This document shows positions 13,671 to 22,004 of a stretch of DNA of 47,548 nucleotides, one piece after another. Source of the DNA: Ministeria vibrans ATCC 50519 (taxonomy: Eukaryota; Protista; Filasterea). Numbering within the stretch: position 1 is the stretch's first letter; every line of letters starts with the position of its first letter. The DNA lies in the NCBI GenBank assembly GCA_943704425.1, contig CALSCP010001006.1, positions 1 to 47,548 of the forward strand, read 5' to 3'. The position numbers and the translations under genes were made by a program. A model generated the notes under the pieces. The model did no database searches, was not told the origin of the DNA, and worked only from the letters and a program-made list of their open reading frames with translations.

Positions 13671-16600
13671 TCACACAAGTGACATATGACAAGGCTGCAA
13701 CTCAATGGTCTCTTGGTGTGCGTCATCAAGAAGAAGAGTGGTCGATGCACACGAAGGCTTCGTGACGACAGTCGTCACTACACCAGGTGGTGTTTCCTCA
13801 GTTCCAATAAACTCCCCTCGTTCTTCGGTCGTTTCTGCACCTCCTCCTCCTTCCTCGTCCTTTTCTTGGTGCGAACGAGGGCGACGCAGTAAACGTGTCG
13901 ACACTCGCGACGGACGATGCGACCGTGGGCTGCTGTGCTGGGCCACAACACGCGCATGCCGCAGAAGACTGCTGCTCACAGGAGTGTGACGTCGCATCAG
14001 TGTCCCAAAGGTGGCAGCGACGGTCGTCAACGGATCGGCCAGGGAGACGGCACTGCCCTTGTGACAAGGCTGATTGGCATTCAGTTGGTGACCGGTGGGA
14101 CTCGTGTAGTGTCGCAACACCCGCTGAAGCTGCCCAAAGGCACTGACAAACGAGACGTGCTCGCGCGCATCGACTGCAGGTGCACTCTCCAGTACATCAT
14201 GTACAAGAGCATGCTCCAAGAGCTCCGTTGTGCAGTCGGCGGCAATCAGCACCACAATGGTCTTCTTGAGCTCTTGTGCATACATCACCTCCTCCTGGCA
14301 GTACTGCGAGCTCACCGACGTGGGCGTCGCCACAAACAGCAGCACACGACAGCCACGTACCGCATCGCCAATAGTTGTGCGCCAATAGTCGCCCGACGAC
14401 AGACCCAGAAAGTCAATCCAACAGTCGAAACCAGCCTTCTCCAAATCGGGCCACAGGCGCGCCTTGACAATCTCATGGTCTCGATGCGCCCACGAAATGA
14501 ACACCTCCTGCGGCTTCACCGCATCCGCCAGGCCAGGACCCAAGTCGCGCCCCACAGCAATCTTGGCAGGCACACCACCAGCAGCAACCCCACTAGTACT
14601 CGAAGAGATACCTATCGAAGTGCCCTTGGAGCTGCCTCCAGTCGCCAACAGAGCCATCTCCGTCCCGGGTGTGTTTCCAGTGAGAAAGCGTGCCAGACCC
14701 GCAATGAGCGCCTCGCAATCAATCGTACTGTTTGTCGCAGGCATATTCGTCCACTGGTACCGTTTCAGGAGCATCTCTAGACCCGCATCCGCCATCCCCA
14801 TCGCCTCGCTGTCCCGAATAATTGGGAATATTTGCAACTAAACAATTCAAAAAAGAAACAGATTAATGCAAAGGTATCAAAACAAACAGCAAACAAAAAA
14901 AATCCAATAAGAATATTATTATTATGATTATTATTATAATAATAAAATGACTATAATAACAATAATAATAATGGAAATAATAATGGTAATATTAATCATA
15001 ATAATATAATAATAATAATGGTAATAATAATCATAATAATTATAATAATAATGGTAATAATAATCATAATAATATAATAATAATAATGGTAATAATAATC
15101 ATAATAATTATAATAATAATGGTAATAATAATCATAATTTATAATAATACGTCTCTCTCTCTCTCTACCGTTGCACTTACTTTGCAATCGTATGCATACT
15201 GGACCTCCTCGAGACAGTACGGCGAGACAACTGACTCCTTGGATACAATAAAGAGCAGGACCTTACTGGCGCGGATCGCCTGTGCTACCTCCTTGCGCCA
15301 GAAGGCGCCGGCCTCGGCACGCACCTCGTCGACATGCACGCCCACACCATACTCGGACAGCTCCAGTACCAGCTGCGACATAAACTTTCGGTCGCTTGCC
15401 GCGTACGAGACAAAGGCTTCCTTGTCGCCGCCGTGCCACCCGAGAGAGCGATGACACACGAGCGCAACGGGCATAAAGACAAACACAATAATGAGCAGAA
15501 TAGTCGCAATGGAGAGGATGGCCGCTGAGAAGAGAACCCACTCTTGACGTCCCGACTCAATCGACACGATCACCGCAGCCGCCACACTCAGCAACACGAG
15601 ACCCCACAGCAGATACGAGAGTCGCGATGACTCACTGTAGAGCGTCGTGACGTTGCGTCGTCGCCATGTCTGGTACAGCAACCAGGCAAAGGGTAAACCC
15701 AAAATGACCAACAGGAGAATGCTAAGTGCCGACGACAGGGCACACCGCGTGTACACCAAGTCGTCGCTTCTGATGATCGCCTCAATGAGAATACCGTTCT
15801 CGGTTGCGGCAAATGCCCCAATAACAATGGACACTACAGAGAGCATAAACACCGTGGCAGCAACCACACGCCAGCCCGGCACAACCATACTCACATTGCG
15901 CACTTGCACCTTGGCAGCGAGACGCAGCGAGAAAAACTTGACAAGAAGTGGTGCAATTACAGCCACAATTTCGAAGGAGGCCATCACCAAGAGCACCGAG
16001 CAATCGGAAGGCGACCAATTCGACGAGTGTAGCATAGTGATCACCAGCGCGAACAGACAGCTGAGAATTAGACACGACAGTAGAGGCAGACCAAACACTT
16101 GCACAACCTTGATTGAGCGCCATCGCACAAAGTACGTGTAGAAAAGGAGAGCAACAAGGAAGACGAGCCAGCCAATCACGACGAGAGCAATCCGTAGACT
16201 GTCCATCACTTCAACACGCTGTGTGCAGCGCGGATAGGCGTCGTTGTTACCGTCGGGAATGAGCTCGGCCCGCGGGCCAATAAGATTGCAGTCGAGAATA
16301 GTCAGAGGAATCACCGCACCCAGAATGTTCGGGTCGTTGTCCGACTTAAACGAGATGCAGTAGTTGCCAGCGAGGCCATACACGGTTGGGGCGGGGTCAA
16401 TCGTCGACGTTCCATTGACGAGCGAAAGCATCAACAAGTCGACGTTGTTGATGAAGCTGGCATTGGACAGCAGTGACGGCAATGGCATGTCAAGACTGCC
16501 TTCACATGTGCCAATAAGACCATTCAAACGATCGTTCAAATTCAATGTGATCTGACCAAAAATGTCCACCATGCGCACGACTATGGGAGTCACCGTCACC

Positions 16601-17140
16601 AGATCACCGCTGAATATTTCAATTCTACTGTCCAACGTTGCCAATGGTGACACCACCAACAACTGGTAAGGGTTGCTTGCAACGATTTCGCCATATTCAG
16701 ACGCAACATTACCCGACGCGACAATTCCCGAGCGGAGCTCCGCAATAATTCGCTCAGGATTTATGGTAGGGTCGCTACCGTTCACATTGGTCAAAAAAAC
16801 GGCCCCACCGAGTCGCGCACGGTTCCCGGTGACCACCACCTGATCAATCAAATACGACGCGTTGTTGCGCGCATCCAGTGCCATTGCACCACCCGCCCCC
16901 AAAGCTGCCTCGTTGTGGTGGAAGTGACAATCTTGCACAACCACCTCAGAATTGACAACTGTAGGCACGCCCACAAACACCGCACCACCCACACTGTCAG
17001 AGTTACCAACAGCAAGATTTCGGTCAAATATTGATGTGGTAATCCGCACCGAGGTGTCCTCCGCAAAGATAGCGCCGCCCATCTACAAAAAGATGAAAAA
17101 AGAAGGGTTGAAAATAAGTAAAAAGCGAAAGATATTACAA

Positions 17141-17180
<40 letters not shown>

Positions 17181-19672
17181 GTTGTTGTTGTTGTTGTTGC
17201 TCTTGTTCTCTATTTATCTTTCTATTATTTTTGTTTGCCAACATTGTGAGATTGGCAAAATTATTGGGTTACTTGTGCAGAGTTATCTTTAAAGATGGAA
17301 CGTTCGACGGAAAGTTGAGACAAGGTGGCGTTGGCGGCGGCTACAAGGCCATCAAAGTTGGGGGAGTAAAGATTGGTGTTGTCCTCTTGAAGACCGGCGG
17401 CGATTGTGACACGGTCGAGACGCGTGAGAAGGAGAGAGGAGGTGACAGAGTCAAGCTCGTACATGGAAGTGATGGACGGGGTGACAGAGGAACCCTCGGC
17501 AATGACAAGGGTGGCGTGGATGACTCCACCAGTGCTGGTACGGGCGTGGTTGTCGATGAACGTGCAGTTGTTCACATTCACAAACGTCAAGTCCGACATG
17601 TAGATCACACCGCCCGACTGGGCAACGTTGCCAATGAATGTTGACCCAATAAGGGTTATATTGCCGTTCTCAAGGACACTGGCAACACCCCCAGACTCTT
17701 GCGAGGCAGTGTTGTTGACAATGTAAGACTGAGCGAGGACAGCACGAGCACTGCCCGTCAGCGACACACAACCCCCACCAAAGACTGCCGTGTTGTTGGT
17801 CAGTGCACACTCGTCGCACTCAAAGCGTCCATCCATTGTCGCCTGCACCACTCCCCCTTGCACTCCAATGTTGTGTTCAAAAGAGCTACATAAATACAGA
17901 GTAAAAGAGAGCAAGCAAGTCAAACACACAGGAAAACACGAAACAAAAGAAGAAAAATACAAAAAAATAAATAAGCACAAGAGTGTTGTATACCATTGCA
18001 AACACTCAATGTGACTGGTGTGGAGAAGAAGAAAAACACCGCCCCACCCCTGTGTAATGCAGTGGGAGGCAGAAAGATGGGTGGCAAGAATGCCGGAAGA
18101 GTCGCTCATGCCGATAGCGCCACCCTGAAGCGCCACGGACGCTCGAATTGTGACATTTGTGAGCTTCGCAAGGGACTCGTCAAAAGTCGCCAGGGCACCA
18201 CCGTAGGACGCAAAGTTGGCATTCAGCGTCAGAATGTTTGCAGTGAGAAGAGCAAACTTGGAAACGGAGATGGCACCACCGTGATAGGCAAGACACTCGT
18301 CAAAGGTGCAACGGGCAAGAGTGGCGCGTGCCGAGTTGTCAAGGGCGATGGAGCCGCCGGAGAAGCGCGCCGTGTTCAGACGGAAAGTACAGTCGGTGAG
18401 ATGTGCCTCGGCAAAGTCGTAGAGAGCAATGGCACCACCGTCAATATGCGATGCGCACGACTCAAAGGTGGTGTGGCTGACATCGATGCGTCCATTGGAG
18501 ACGACGGTGATGGCGCCGGCGCCCAAGAGCGAGCTAAGGCTGGAGCCAACGGAGTCGAGGGCTTTGCACTGAAGTATGTGAGAATCGCTCATGATCAGGG
18601 AACCAAAGACGTTGAAGCAGCCTGCGGCAAGGCCGCTTGAGAGAACTATCGACGAGACGTCGACTACAAGCGACGCCGTCTCGCTTACCACGGCAATGCC
18701 CGCCGTGAGTTCGCCAAGTGACGTTGTTACGTTTCCATCAAGGAGACGCGCTGTGCACAGCAACATGGTGGCACGTGTTAAAGAGACATGCGAGAGCCCA
18801 TTCTGGTAGATGACACCGCCAAAAGCACCGAAAGAGAAGGTTACATTCGTATCGGAGAGCGTCAAGCTTGCTTGACGGTGCACAAAGAAGGCGCCTGCAG
18901 GACTTCCAAACGATAGTGACACGTCCATGTGTGACATGGTCGCTGCTGCACCGGTGCCCACATAGGCAACACCAGCAACATCAAAGCGATCTGTTACAAA
19001 CACCCTGCCGGCATGGAAGAAGAGAGAGACGGTCGTCATCGCGTCGATCACTGCAAAAAAATACATCAAAATATACAAACGGGTGTCGGTTCGCACAGGG
19101 TCTTTTGACTCATGGCTATTCTTACGGGTCATATCAAAGATGACATGAAGTTCATCGGGAATGCCGCCAGTCACCTGCACATGGGAGACGTCGACGGTGG
19201 CGCGACTGCTGACAAAGATGGGCGATGCGTCAAAGCAACCGACGACGGTCAGGTTGGTAATGCTCACTCGGGATGCCCCTGCGCTCACAATCACCGCGCC
19301 GTCTGACGTGGCGGTGACATTGACAGAGGAATGGACGCAGCAGGTGAGGAGTGTGTTCGGTCCGCTCCCCACAAGTTGTGCGCCTGAATTCAGTGTGAAA
19401 GGTAGGACGTGCGGCGTAAAGACGCCCGCACTGAGCTGTAGGACCCCATCGCGGGGCACCTCCTTGGATCCACCCAGTGTAGCAAGCACCGCAGCCTCGG
19501 CTGCGTTCGGGCTTGCCTCTTGGCACGCCAATTTTGAGAGGGAGATGATCGACGAAATGTCGTCCACCGGTAAAACGGACGAGACCAAGTCCGATTCACT
19601 CAGTGCCGAATTGGACTGCCAGAAAAGAGCCAGAAACACACCCAGCATCAGGGCTCGTCTGTGCGTCTTCAT
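13671..19672 (-). CDS. Multidomain receptor: signal peptide, parallel beta-helix (GGA[I/L/V]/FxxNxA repeats), class C GPCR-like 7TM, two TIR domains (~1,750 aa)
   Basis: In-frame splices NSAQ|MGGAIF (intron 17272-17083) and YAYDCK|LQIFPI (intron 15180-14838), plus two probable in-frame introns (~19145-19052 and ~17993-17886). Seven hydrophobic segments at ~16200-15455. TIR motifs AFVSY...SPYCLEEV and VFISW...SQYCQEEV. Confidence 0.85.
14905..15150. repeat. (AAT)n-rich intronic microsatellite
   Basis: Degenerate ATA/AAT trinucleotide array in the intron that splits TIR1. Confidence 0.9.
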
Positions 19673-19955
19673 CGTGAAGATACGAAATTCAGTATTTATT
19701 TTGTTCAGTTTTCATTCTTTGGGTCTAAATGCACAATAATACTTTTTCGTAGTCTTTCATAATTGTGTCTTCGATCTCGTCCCCTTGGGGATGGTTGAGG
19801 GCAGTGAGTGCGGGCGTATTGACTAAAGGGTGTACAAGTGACAAGTACGTGCTCTTCTTGGCCAGCGATTTGCGGCTGTAAATTGTAATCATCATAACTT
19901 GAATTTTGACAATTTGACTTATTTTCAATTTTTATTCACTTTTTCTGTTATCGAT

Positions 19956-22004
<2,049 letters not shown>

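Follow-up and report, generated by a model that had tools for sequence, protein, structure and literature searches.

A predicted class C-type seven-transmembrane receptor with a beta-helix ectodomain and tandem TIR domains in the filasterean Ministeria vibrans

The locus considered here raises the question of whether one polypeptide can join the seven-transmembrane (7TM) core of a class C G-protein-coupled receptor (GPCR) to TIR domains of its own, and of what such a protein would do. It lies on the minus strand of contig CALSCP010001006.1 from the filasterean Ministeria vibrans ATCC 50519 (GenBank assembly GCA_943704425.1), at positions 13671 to 19672 of the 47,548-nucleotide stretch that was analysed as a whole and is referred to below as the window. 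To our knowledge the TIR receptors known so far are either single-pass proteins, such as the Toll-like receptors (TLRs) and IL-1R, or soluble, and we know of no class C receptor that carries a TIR domain. The receptor encoded in the window combines three known kinds of molecule, the class C GPCR, the TIR receptor and the GPCR-effector fusion, and belongs to a small, uncharacterised filasterean family.

The first point to settle is whether the locus is one gene. It contains three long open reading frames (ORFs) on the minus strand, at 17261-19672, 15139-17082 and 13671-14837, and an initial annotation made from the DNA sequence had proposed that these splice in frame, at the junctions NSAQ/MGGAIF and DCK/LQIFPI, into one protein of about 1,750 amino acids. 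We compared four public runs over positions 13690-19689, of which X1 and X3 are DNA and X7 (2025) is guessed to be RNA. A single X7 contig of 5310 nt spans the locus from 19646 down to beyond 13690 with 0 mismatches and omits exactly four stretches, 19051-19125, 17886-17993, 17083-17272 and 14838-15180, all of which are bounded by GT..AG on the minus strand. None of these splice joints is found in the DNA runs X1 and X3. Both proposed junctions are therefore reproduced exactly by the contig, and the proposed size was close to the mark, the coding sequence of 5286 nt giving a protein of 1761 amino acids where the sum of the three raw ORFs would be 1822. The division into three pieces did not hold, since it missed two in-frame introns of 75 and 108 nt. 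The receptor locus is a single expressed gene with five exons.

Exon 1 (19126..19672, 547 nt) begins with the start ATG at 19672 and is joined to exon 2 across 19050/19126 in the X7 contig. Exon 2 (17994..19050, 1057 nt) encodes a right-handed parallel beta-helix, which goes on in the Pmp-type repeats of exon 3 (17273..17885, 613 nt). Exon 4 (15181..17082, 1902 nt, 634 amino acids) encodes the four last GGA rungs, a stalk, the 7TM core and the N-terminal part of the first TIR domain (TIR1), and exon 5 (13671..14837, 1167 nt including the stop codon) the rest of TIR1, a linker, the second TIR domain (TIR2) and a non-conserved tail. Introns 1 (19051..19125) and 2 (17886..17993) both lie inside the first ORF. 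Intron 3 (17083..17272, 190 nt), which is rich in AAT/ATT repeats, accounts for the NSAQ/MGGAIF junction, and intron 4 (14838..15180, 343 nt, 16% GC, with ATT repeats) for the DCK/LQIFPI junction, where it interrupts TIR1. The GC content of the four introns is 16-40% and their 3' ends are pyrimidine-rich. At the position of intron 4 the TIR1 frame is uninterrupted in a paralog (locus C2106) and in both related genes of Capsaspora owczarzaki.

Could the ectodomain, the 7TM core and the TIR domains still be separate genes, or have been brought together by a chimeric assembly? Such an artefact would find room in the facts that X7 is only guessed to be RNA, that an assembled contig is no proof of one molecule and that the coding sequence is missing its first 26 nt in this contig. 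It is contradicted by exon 4, a single open exon whose 634 codons contain the last beta-helix repeats, the 7TM core and the first two thirds of TIR1, so that the fusion of these parts is independent of splicing. It is contradicted as well by the four exact GT..AG joints of one RNA-type contig, which crosses both proposed junctions and whose joints are absent from the DNA runs, and by the recurrence of this domain order in the four paralogs, in both Capsaspora genes and on a metagenome contig. We consider an artefact extremely improbable.

Two observations on the DNA of the locus may be added. The stretches 14904-15149 and 17132-17213, each within an intron, are mostly ATT/ATA/AAT microsatellite-like sequence with a GC content of 16-23%, compared with about 50% in the exons, and the DNA contigs of all runs end within these two introns. 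Between runs that carry the same species label two coding single-base differences were also seen, C>T at 13784 in X3 (2022) and G>A at 18785 in X1 (2011), which could reflect strain, allele or assembly error.

What, then, does the gene encode outside the membrane? All homology searches were performed on the individual exons and not on the joined protein. Judged by eye and by hydropathy, residues 1 to about 25 resemble a signal peptide, with basic residues (KTHRR) in the n-region, then a hydrophobic core of 12 residues and a site of small residues, SNSA/LS, of the kind at which signal peptides are cleaved. Exon 2 matches Pfam Beta_helix (E 3.1e-8, 33.8 bits against a cut-off of 25.9), and exon 3 matches both Pfam Chlam_PMP (E 3.3e-7, 30.3 bits against 20.6) and TIGR01376 POMP_repeat (E 8e-8, 31.8 bits against 15). 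In the raw, unspliced ORFs the Pfam matches of the ectodomain are sub-threshold; they rise above the cut-off once the introns are removed. The GGA(I/L) motifs are spaced by 26-27 residues in exon 2 and by about 30 in the first part of exon 4. Matches to ivWA, HalA and GspN on exons 1-2 fell far under their cut-offs and were dropped.

The AlphaFold model of exon 2, built on a seven-row alignment, is all-beta with regular three-strand rungs and has a mean predicted local distance difference test (pLDDT) score of 87.6 and a predicted template modelling score (pTM) of 0.87. When this model was compared with the Protein Data Bank (PDB) by Foldseek, nearly all matches were right-handed beta-helices, among them the adhesins TibA, PfbA, Ag43 and pertactin, polygalacturonases, AlgG and phage tailspikes. 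The E-values are weak (7e-4 to 6e-2), so that the matches support the fold and no particular family. A Pfam search of the exons gave no match to ANF, NCD3G or Cache on any exon, Beta_helix and Chlam_PMP being found instead; no Pfam match to leucine-rich repeats (LRRs) was reported for any exon, and none to an autotransporter beta-barrel, the C-terminal half of the protein consisting of the 7TM core and the TIR domains. Between the last rungs and the membrane lies a juxtamembrane stalk (16204..16752, minus strand, exon-4 residues ~111-293), which is predicted to be mostly beta. The paralog sequences and the alignment consensus place three common Cys positions in it directly before TM1. The AlphaFold model of the stalk is of low to medium confidence.

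The membrane part is encoded at 15451..16203 on the minus strand (exon-4 residues 294-544, protein residues ~1033-1283) and is a class C-type 7TM core. Exon 4 matches Pfam 7tm_3 with E 8.6e-11 and 42.4 bits against a cut-off of 33.5, and the match covers profile positions 3-249 of 251; the same profile gives up to 67 bits in the paralogs and 82-105 bits in Capsaspora. Seven hydrophobic segments were found at exon-4 residues 296-543, the first of them followed by a basic loop with the sequence RWRSIK. The other motifs present are the Cys and LLVKF of TM3, a Cys in the second extracellular loop (ECL2), RNVTTLYSES and an FMP in TM7. AlphaFold gives exon 4 a pLDDT of 70 overall and of 80-90 in the membrane part, with seven helices at 294-544, a beta-hairpin in ECL2 and a beta-alpha-beta arrangement of TIR type after the helices. 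In a Foldseek search with the 7TM model, class C GPCRs take all listed ranks 1-50, with mGlu2 at 2.4e-9, and the crystal structure of the mGlu1 7TM domain (4or2) superposes on the model with a root-mean-square deviation of 3.7 A over 261 columns.

A profile built from the five paralogs was also compared with the PDB. Its best match is GPR158/mGlyR (1.3e-8), followed by GABA-B and mGlu1/3/5, and the alignment to GPR158 brings the Cys and Lys of TM3, the Cys of ECL2 and the Arg..Glu loop that precedes TM6 into register. In class C receptors the TM3 Lys and the loop Glu form a pair that locks the receptor in its inactive state. Both residues are invariant among the paralogs (K99 and the TM6-proximal E201 in our alignment A1), as is the TM3-ECL2 Cys pair (C78 and C164). 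The TM7 of class C receptors carries a motif of the PKxY type; of this only the Pro is invariant here (P255 in A1), and a Lys stands at +3 to +5 in some paralogs and not in the window protein. Because a signal-peptide-like N-terminus is combined with seven transmembrane segments, the TIR domains are predicted to be cytosolic. The predicted topology is type I-oriented, with about 1030 amino acids outside and both TIR domains and the tail inside.

The first strand of TIR1 begins only about 12 residues after TM7, and the linker is conserved among the paralogs, one Trp in it being invariant. The N-terminal part of TIR1 (15181..15423, minus strand, exon-4 residues 554-634) matches Pfam TIR_2 with E 3.8e-15 and 56.9 bits against a cut-off of 28. 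Its C-terminal part (14682..14837, minus strand, exon-5 residues 1 to ~52) is collinear with TIR1 of Capsaspora, with 52-56% identity, and with the uninterrupted C2106 ORF. A Gly/Ser-rich linker of about 55 residues leads to TIR2 (14103..14510, minus strand, exon-5 residues ~110-245), which matches TIR_2 with E 4.7e-19 and 69.5 bits against the same cut-off. The description of the modules in the initial annotation, a signal peptide, a beta-helix of GGA(I/L/V)/FxxN repeats, seven helices with class C hallmarks and two TIR domains behind them, agrees with each of these results.

To place the TIR domains among known ones, TIR2 was compared as a profile with solved structures. TLR15 and TLR2 were matched over the whole domain at 7e-10, TLR1 at 1e-6 and TLR6 at 2e-6, and bacterial, plant and SARM1 TIRs lay between 1e-4 and 1e-2. 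By this profile comparison TIR2 is clearly nearest to the TIR domains of animal TLR1/2/6/10/15 among solved structures. Both TIR domains score far higher with Pfam TIR_2 than with Pfam TIR, and in NCBIfam it is a Thoeris TIR protein that TIR2 matches best (E 1.1e-9). A Glu in the motif Y-C-x-E-E-[VLI] is present in both TIRs of every family member, and that of TIR1 (YCLEEV) aligns with the second Glu of the CLEEL of Roq1, residue 86, which we take to be the catalytic residue of Roq1.

These last features bear on the possibility that the protein is a receptor-enzyme, in which the tandem TIRs would cleave NAD+ in the manner of SARM1 or of plant and bacterial TIRs, ligand binding would draw the TIRs into a composite active site, and the output would be NAD+ depletion or an ADP-ribose (ADPR)-type small signal, not adaptor recruitment. 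The conserved Glu and the two family matches speak in its favour, and the highest-scoring look-alikes of TIR1, among the matches listed from a search of 1.84 billion proteins, include bacterial multi-TIR proteins. To judge from known structures of TIR NADases, two TIRs in cis may also ease the formation of an inter-TIR active site. The Glu, however, does not discriminate enzyme from scaffold TIRs, because the aligned position is also a Glu in TLR1, TLR2 and TLR15, and SARM1 and AbTIR lie at least 20 bits further from TIR2 than TLR TIRs do. The TRPM-type SLOG domain is an ADPR-binding domain; none (LSDAT_euk) was detected in the genome, which is a weak negative, as the assembly is fragmented and no control genome gave a signal. 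We regard the receptor-enzyme, which is the main rival of the reading preferred below, as possible but somewhat unlikely.

The protein ends in M-S-L-V (13674..13685, minus strand), which resembles a class I PDZ ligand, for which the rule is S/T-x-hydrophobic-COOH. The six C-termini of the family that can be read all end in S/T-x-V/L/I: -SLV in the window protein, -TAL in three of the paralogs, and -TSI and -TAV in the Capsaspora proteins. Paralog C2017, whose end is not cleanly readable, was left out of this count. The tail is otherwise non-conserved and is not alignable to that of Capsaspora. From the general rule we infer that the tails are PDZ-ligand-like. At the 3' end of C2017 (L016:2576-3250 and L016:1228-2643) the sequence ITADVSTSES is repeated in two overlapping frames, and the E-T-A-V/L ending of the family appears in the second frame with no stop after it, an oddity that a frameshift, an intron that was missed or a faulty assembly could explain.

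How widely is this design distributed? The M. vibrans genome (29.7 Mb) has five loci, C1006 (the window), C1920, C2373, C2106 and C2017, at which two TIRs come immediately after a 7tm_3 domain, and in each of them a single exon encodes both the 7TM core and the beginning of TIR1. These receptors account for ten of the genome's 13 TIR matches. The remaining three lie on other proteins: a 551-amino-acid ORF at C2602:667-2319 has a PB1 match below threshold (E 1e-3) and, after it, the best-scoring TIR_2 of the genome, a TIR-only ORF lies on C2128 (L014:2624-3775, minus strand), and on C2643 (L015:2153-4999) a ZZ zinc finger is combined with a weak TIR. These three proteins are candidate cytosolic partners of the receptors. 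There are also 7tm_3 genes without a TIR, at C491:91403-91981 and C1908:5496-6324, of which that on C491, with 129 bits, is far closer to the Pfam consensus than are the copies that bear TIRs.

Outside this genome, we searched 1.84 billion representative proteins by HMMER with a profile of the 7TM core and TIR1. Among the 150 best matches, which were those listed, four cover both domains and two of these are proteins of Capsaspora owczarzaki. CAOG_08484 (XP_011270066/KJE89761, 1897 amino acids, with a variant KJE89762) and CAOG_08660 (XP_011270271, 2102 amino acids, and KJE92002, 2080 amino acids) each carry Beta_helix/Chlam_PMP, 7tm_3 and two TIR_2 domains, and are named in the databases as hypothetical or 'TIR domain-containing' proteins. 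The third is a metagenome fragment of 549 amino acids whose 7TM core and TIR1 are identical to those of paralog C2373, and the fourth a 301-amino-acid fragment from a JGI metagenome. The remaining matches listed are nearly all TIR-only, and those that were looked up are bacterial or unnamed multi-TIR proteins.

The JGI contig Ga0620614_038236 (3300071654; L017:1-3169) carries 7tm_3 and then two or three TIR ORFs on one strand. Its DNA gave no match in the M. vibrans genome beyond a simple repeat, so that it comes from a third organism. A word-index search with region 1025-1680 of the Capsaspora protein returned only the two Capsaspora genes; one with region 1000-1400 of a 1406-amino-acid paralog ORF returned only bacterial TIR-WD40/TPR proteins and missed even the Capsaspora homologs, which makes it uninformative. 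An exact look-up of five ORFs of the window in the protein collection found none of them. The order beta-helix, 7tm_3, TIR, TIR has so far been found only in filastereans, that is in M. vibrans, in Capsaspora and on one related environmental contig.

A maximum-likelihood tree unites the Capsaspora pair with the JGI fragment in one clade (93/93) and places the window gene with C2017 (81/88), the branches being long at about one change per site. This grouping indicates that the copies multiplied largely within each lineage. Conservation is uneven along the protein, since identity to Capsaspora is 25-33% in the ectodomain, 21-24% in the 7TM core, 43-56% in TIR1 and 48-55% in TIR2. These identities suggest that selection has acted hardest on the TIRs, which would fit the TIRs as the working output.

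Some observations concern the organism and the surroundings of the gene. DNA of this genome was met in seawater, algal-culture and biofilm metagenomes, and no light-harvesting complex (LHC) gene was found in it, the organism being non-photosynthetic. An ORF on the plus strand (20380-20898), some 700 bp upstream of the receptor's ATG and arranged head-to-head with its gene, resembles an exon of an Rpt-type regulatory AAA-ATPase of the 26S proteasome.

It remains to ask how such a receptor might work. In the reading we prefer, to which we assign a probability of roughly 0.5, binding by the beta-helix switches the class C 7TM core, and the tandem TIRs of the receptor itself are the output, in a Toll-like manner. 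The beta-helix would bind an extracellular polymer or surface, for example a glycan, the surface of prey or of a microbe, or another cell. Binding would shift the conformation of the 7TM core, in which the lock pair of TM3 Lys and loop Glu is retained, and this movement would pass straight to the tandem TIRs through the tether below TM7; it is the shortness of this tether, about 12 residues, that leads us to propose that the switch repositions the TIRs. Assembly would follow, either between the TIRs of the receptor or between these and the small number of TIR proteins in the cytosol, so that the receptor would signal through its own TIRs in place of, or beside, a G protein. Through its PDZ-ligand tail the receptor would be held in a scaffold of the cell cortex.

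Several points weigh against this account. The ligand class, the conformational coupling, the assembly of the TIRs and the PDZ binding are all inferred. The TLR likeness was gauged only on solved structures, in which TLR TIRs are over-represented, and TIR1 stands equally far from TLR1, from Roq1 and from bacterial TIRs, each of which scores about 27-28 bits. The BB-loop Pro is needed for adaptor recruitment, and at the position of the Pro-Gly in the BB-loop of TLR15 TIR2 has Ser-Gly, within LSSG. A search of the genome detected no Rel-homology (NF-kB) domain, a weak result given that no control genome gave a signal and that the assembly is fragmented. A prediction of a homodimer from two copies of the 7TM core with TIR1 scored 0.00, which speaks neither for nor against dimerisation. 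Finally, the genome contains at least three G-alpha loci, which leaves room for ordinary G-protein coupling. The functional proposal of the initial annotation, an adhesion or pattern-recognition receptor coupled to TIR signalling with no adaptor, is likewise a hypothesis, and the three further TIR proteins of the genome might serve as adaptors.

The G-alpha loci, together with the class C fold and the microswitch residues of the 7TM core, would suit a conventional class C GPCR that signals through heterotrimeric G proteins, with the TIRs as accessories for docking, clustering or desensitisation. In all paralogs, however, TIR1 begins about 12 residues after TM7, which would put a folded domain at the place where a G protein docks, and the strongest conservation is in the TIRs and not in the 7TM loops. 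The best solved match of the 7TM core, moreover, is GPR158, which is not known to act as a classical G-protein activator. We consider a conventional receptor quite unlikely.

A broader version of the Toll-like account, which we put forward only tentatively, is that the protein is a pre-animal receptor for patterns or contacts, in which the switching of a class C 7TM core directly drives TIR signalling of the TLR type, with neither a G protein nor an adaptor in between. If this were true, TLR-like TIR signalling would have existed in unicellular holozoans before the TLRs that combine LRRs with a TIR, built on a GPCR chassis, and GPCRs would have a new mode of output. Whatever the output, a class C 7TM core with its own tandem TIRs brings two major signalling systems together in one polypeptide, in a unicellular lineage closely related to animals. 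Should the TIRs be the output, the receptor would provide the GPCR fold with a readout independent of G proteins, and would be a candidate for TIR-based sensing at the cell surface before LRR-TLRs. The function is testable, as Capsaspora is a laboratory organism with two genes of orthologous type, and the TIR conservation, the 12-residue tether and the PDZ-ligand-like tails offer concrete targets for mutants.

Is the design new? The initial annotation had suggested that it might be an undescribed module. We found no paper in the searchable literature that describes a 7tm_3-TIR receptor, and none that contains the Capsaspora locus tags or UniProt identifiers; the sole paper found with both '7tm_3' and 'TIR domain' is on sponge NLRs. 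A 2025 eLife catalogue of GPCRs in animal relatives reports filasterean receptors of the glutamate family and unusual ectodomains, and the term 'TIR' is absent from its main text. Nor is TIR mentioned in a 2014 survey of GPCR architectures. According to a 2022 review, Capsaspora has yielded no obvious TLR, and a choanoflagellate study places the origin of TLRs in the common ancestor of choanoflagellates and animals. The suggestion stands in so far as the design appears to be undescribed in print, but two Capsaspora examples were already in the databases. What is new here is that the TIRs are the most conserved part, that TIR2 is nearest to TLR1/2/6/10/15 TIRs among the structures solved, that a tether of only about 12 residues connects TM7 to TIR1, and that the proteins have PDZ-ligand-like ends.

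How does the receptor compare with systems that are already known? With the class C GPCRs (GPR158/mGlyR, GABA-B, mGlu and CaSR) it shares the fold, the TM3-ECL2 Cys pair, the TM3 Lys, the Glu of the R..FNE-type loop and the ECL2 hairpin. A Venus-flytrap domain (ANF), with or without a cysteine-rich domain, is the typical if not universal class C ectodomain, whereas the window protein has a beta-helix in place of Venus-flytrap/ANF, NCD3G or Cache, and of the TM7 motif only the Pro. The ectodomain itself is closest in kind to chlamydial Pmp proteins and the adhesins TibA, Ag43, pertactin and PfbA, which have in common with it the GGA(I/L/V) and FxxN repeats and the right-handed beta-helix. The likeness to these proteins is at the level of the fold only, the window protein having no reported beta-barrel match and a predicted type I topology of eukaryotic kind.

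On the inner side of the membrane the comparison is with TIR proteins. Like the TLRs, the window protein would be a receptor at the cell surface, with a repeat solenoid outside and TIR in the cytosol, and TIR2 is nearest to TLR1/2/6/10/15 among solved structures. Unlike them it has seven transmembrane segments in place of one, a beta-helix in place of LRRs, two TIRs in place of one and Ser-Gly in place of Pro-Gly. The TIR NADases of SARM1, bacteria and plants have TIR_2-type domains and the conserved Glu in the alpha-C region in common with it, but they are soluble and become active on oligomerising through ARM/SAM, NLR or phage cues, whereas here the TIRs are tethered to a 7TM core and enzyme activity is only a candidate property.

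Joining a 7TM core to an effector is itself an established design. The GPCR-effector fusions ('GPCR-bigrams', GPCR-PIPK/RpkA and GPCR-TKL/TK), which occur in protists including relatives of animals, have an N-terminal 7TM core and a C-terminal effector as the window protein does; their partners, in contrast, are lipid kinases, protein kinases, cyclases and phosphodiesterases. The nearest counterparts of all are CAOG_08484 and CAOG_08660 of Capsaspora, with the same domain order, collinear homology, both TIR subtypes and PDZ-ligand-like ends. They differ in forming a clade of their own, and are only 21-33% identical to the window protein in the ectodomain and 7TM core.

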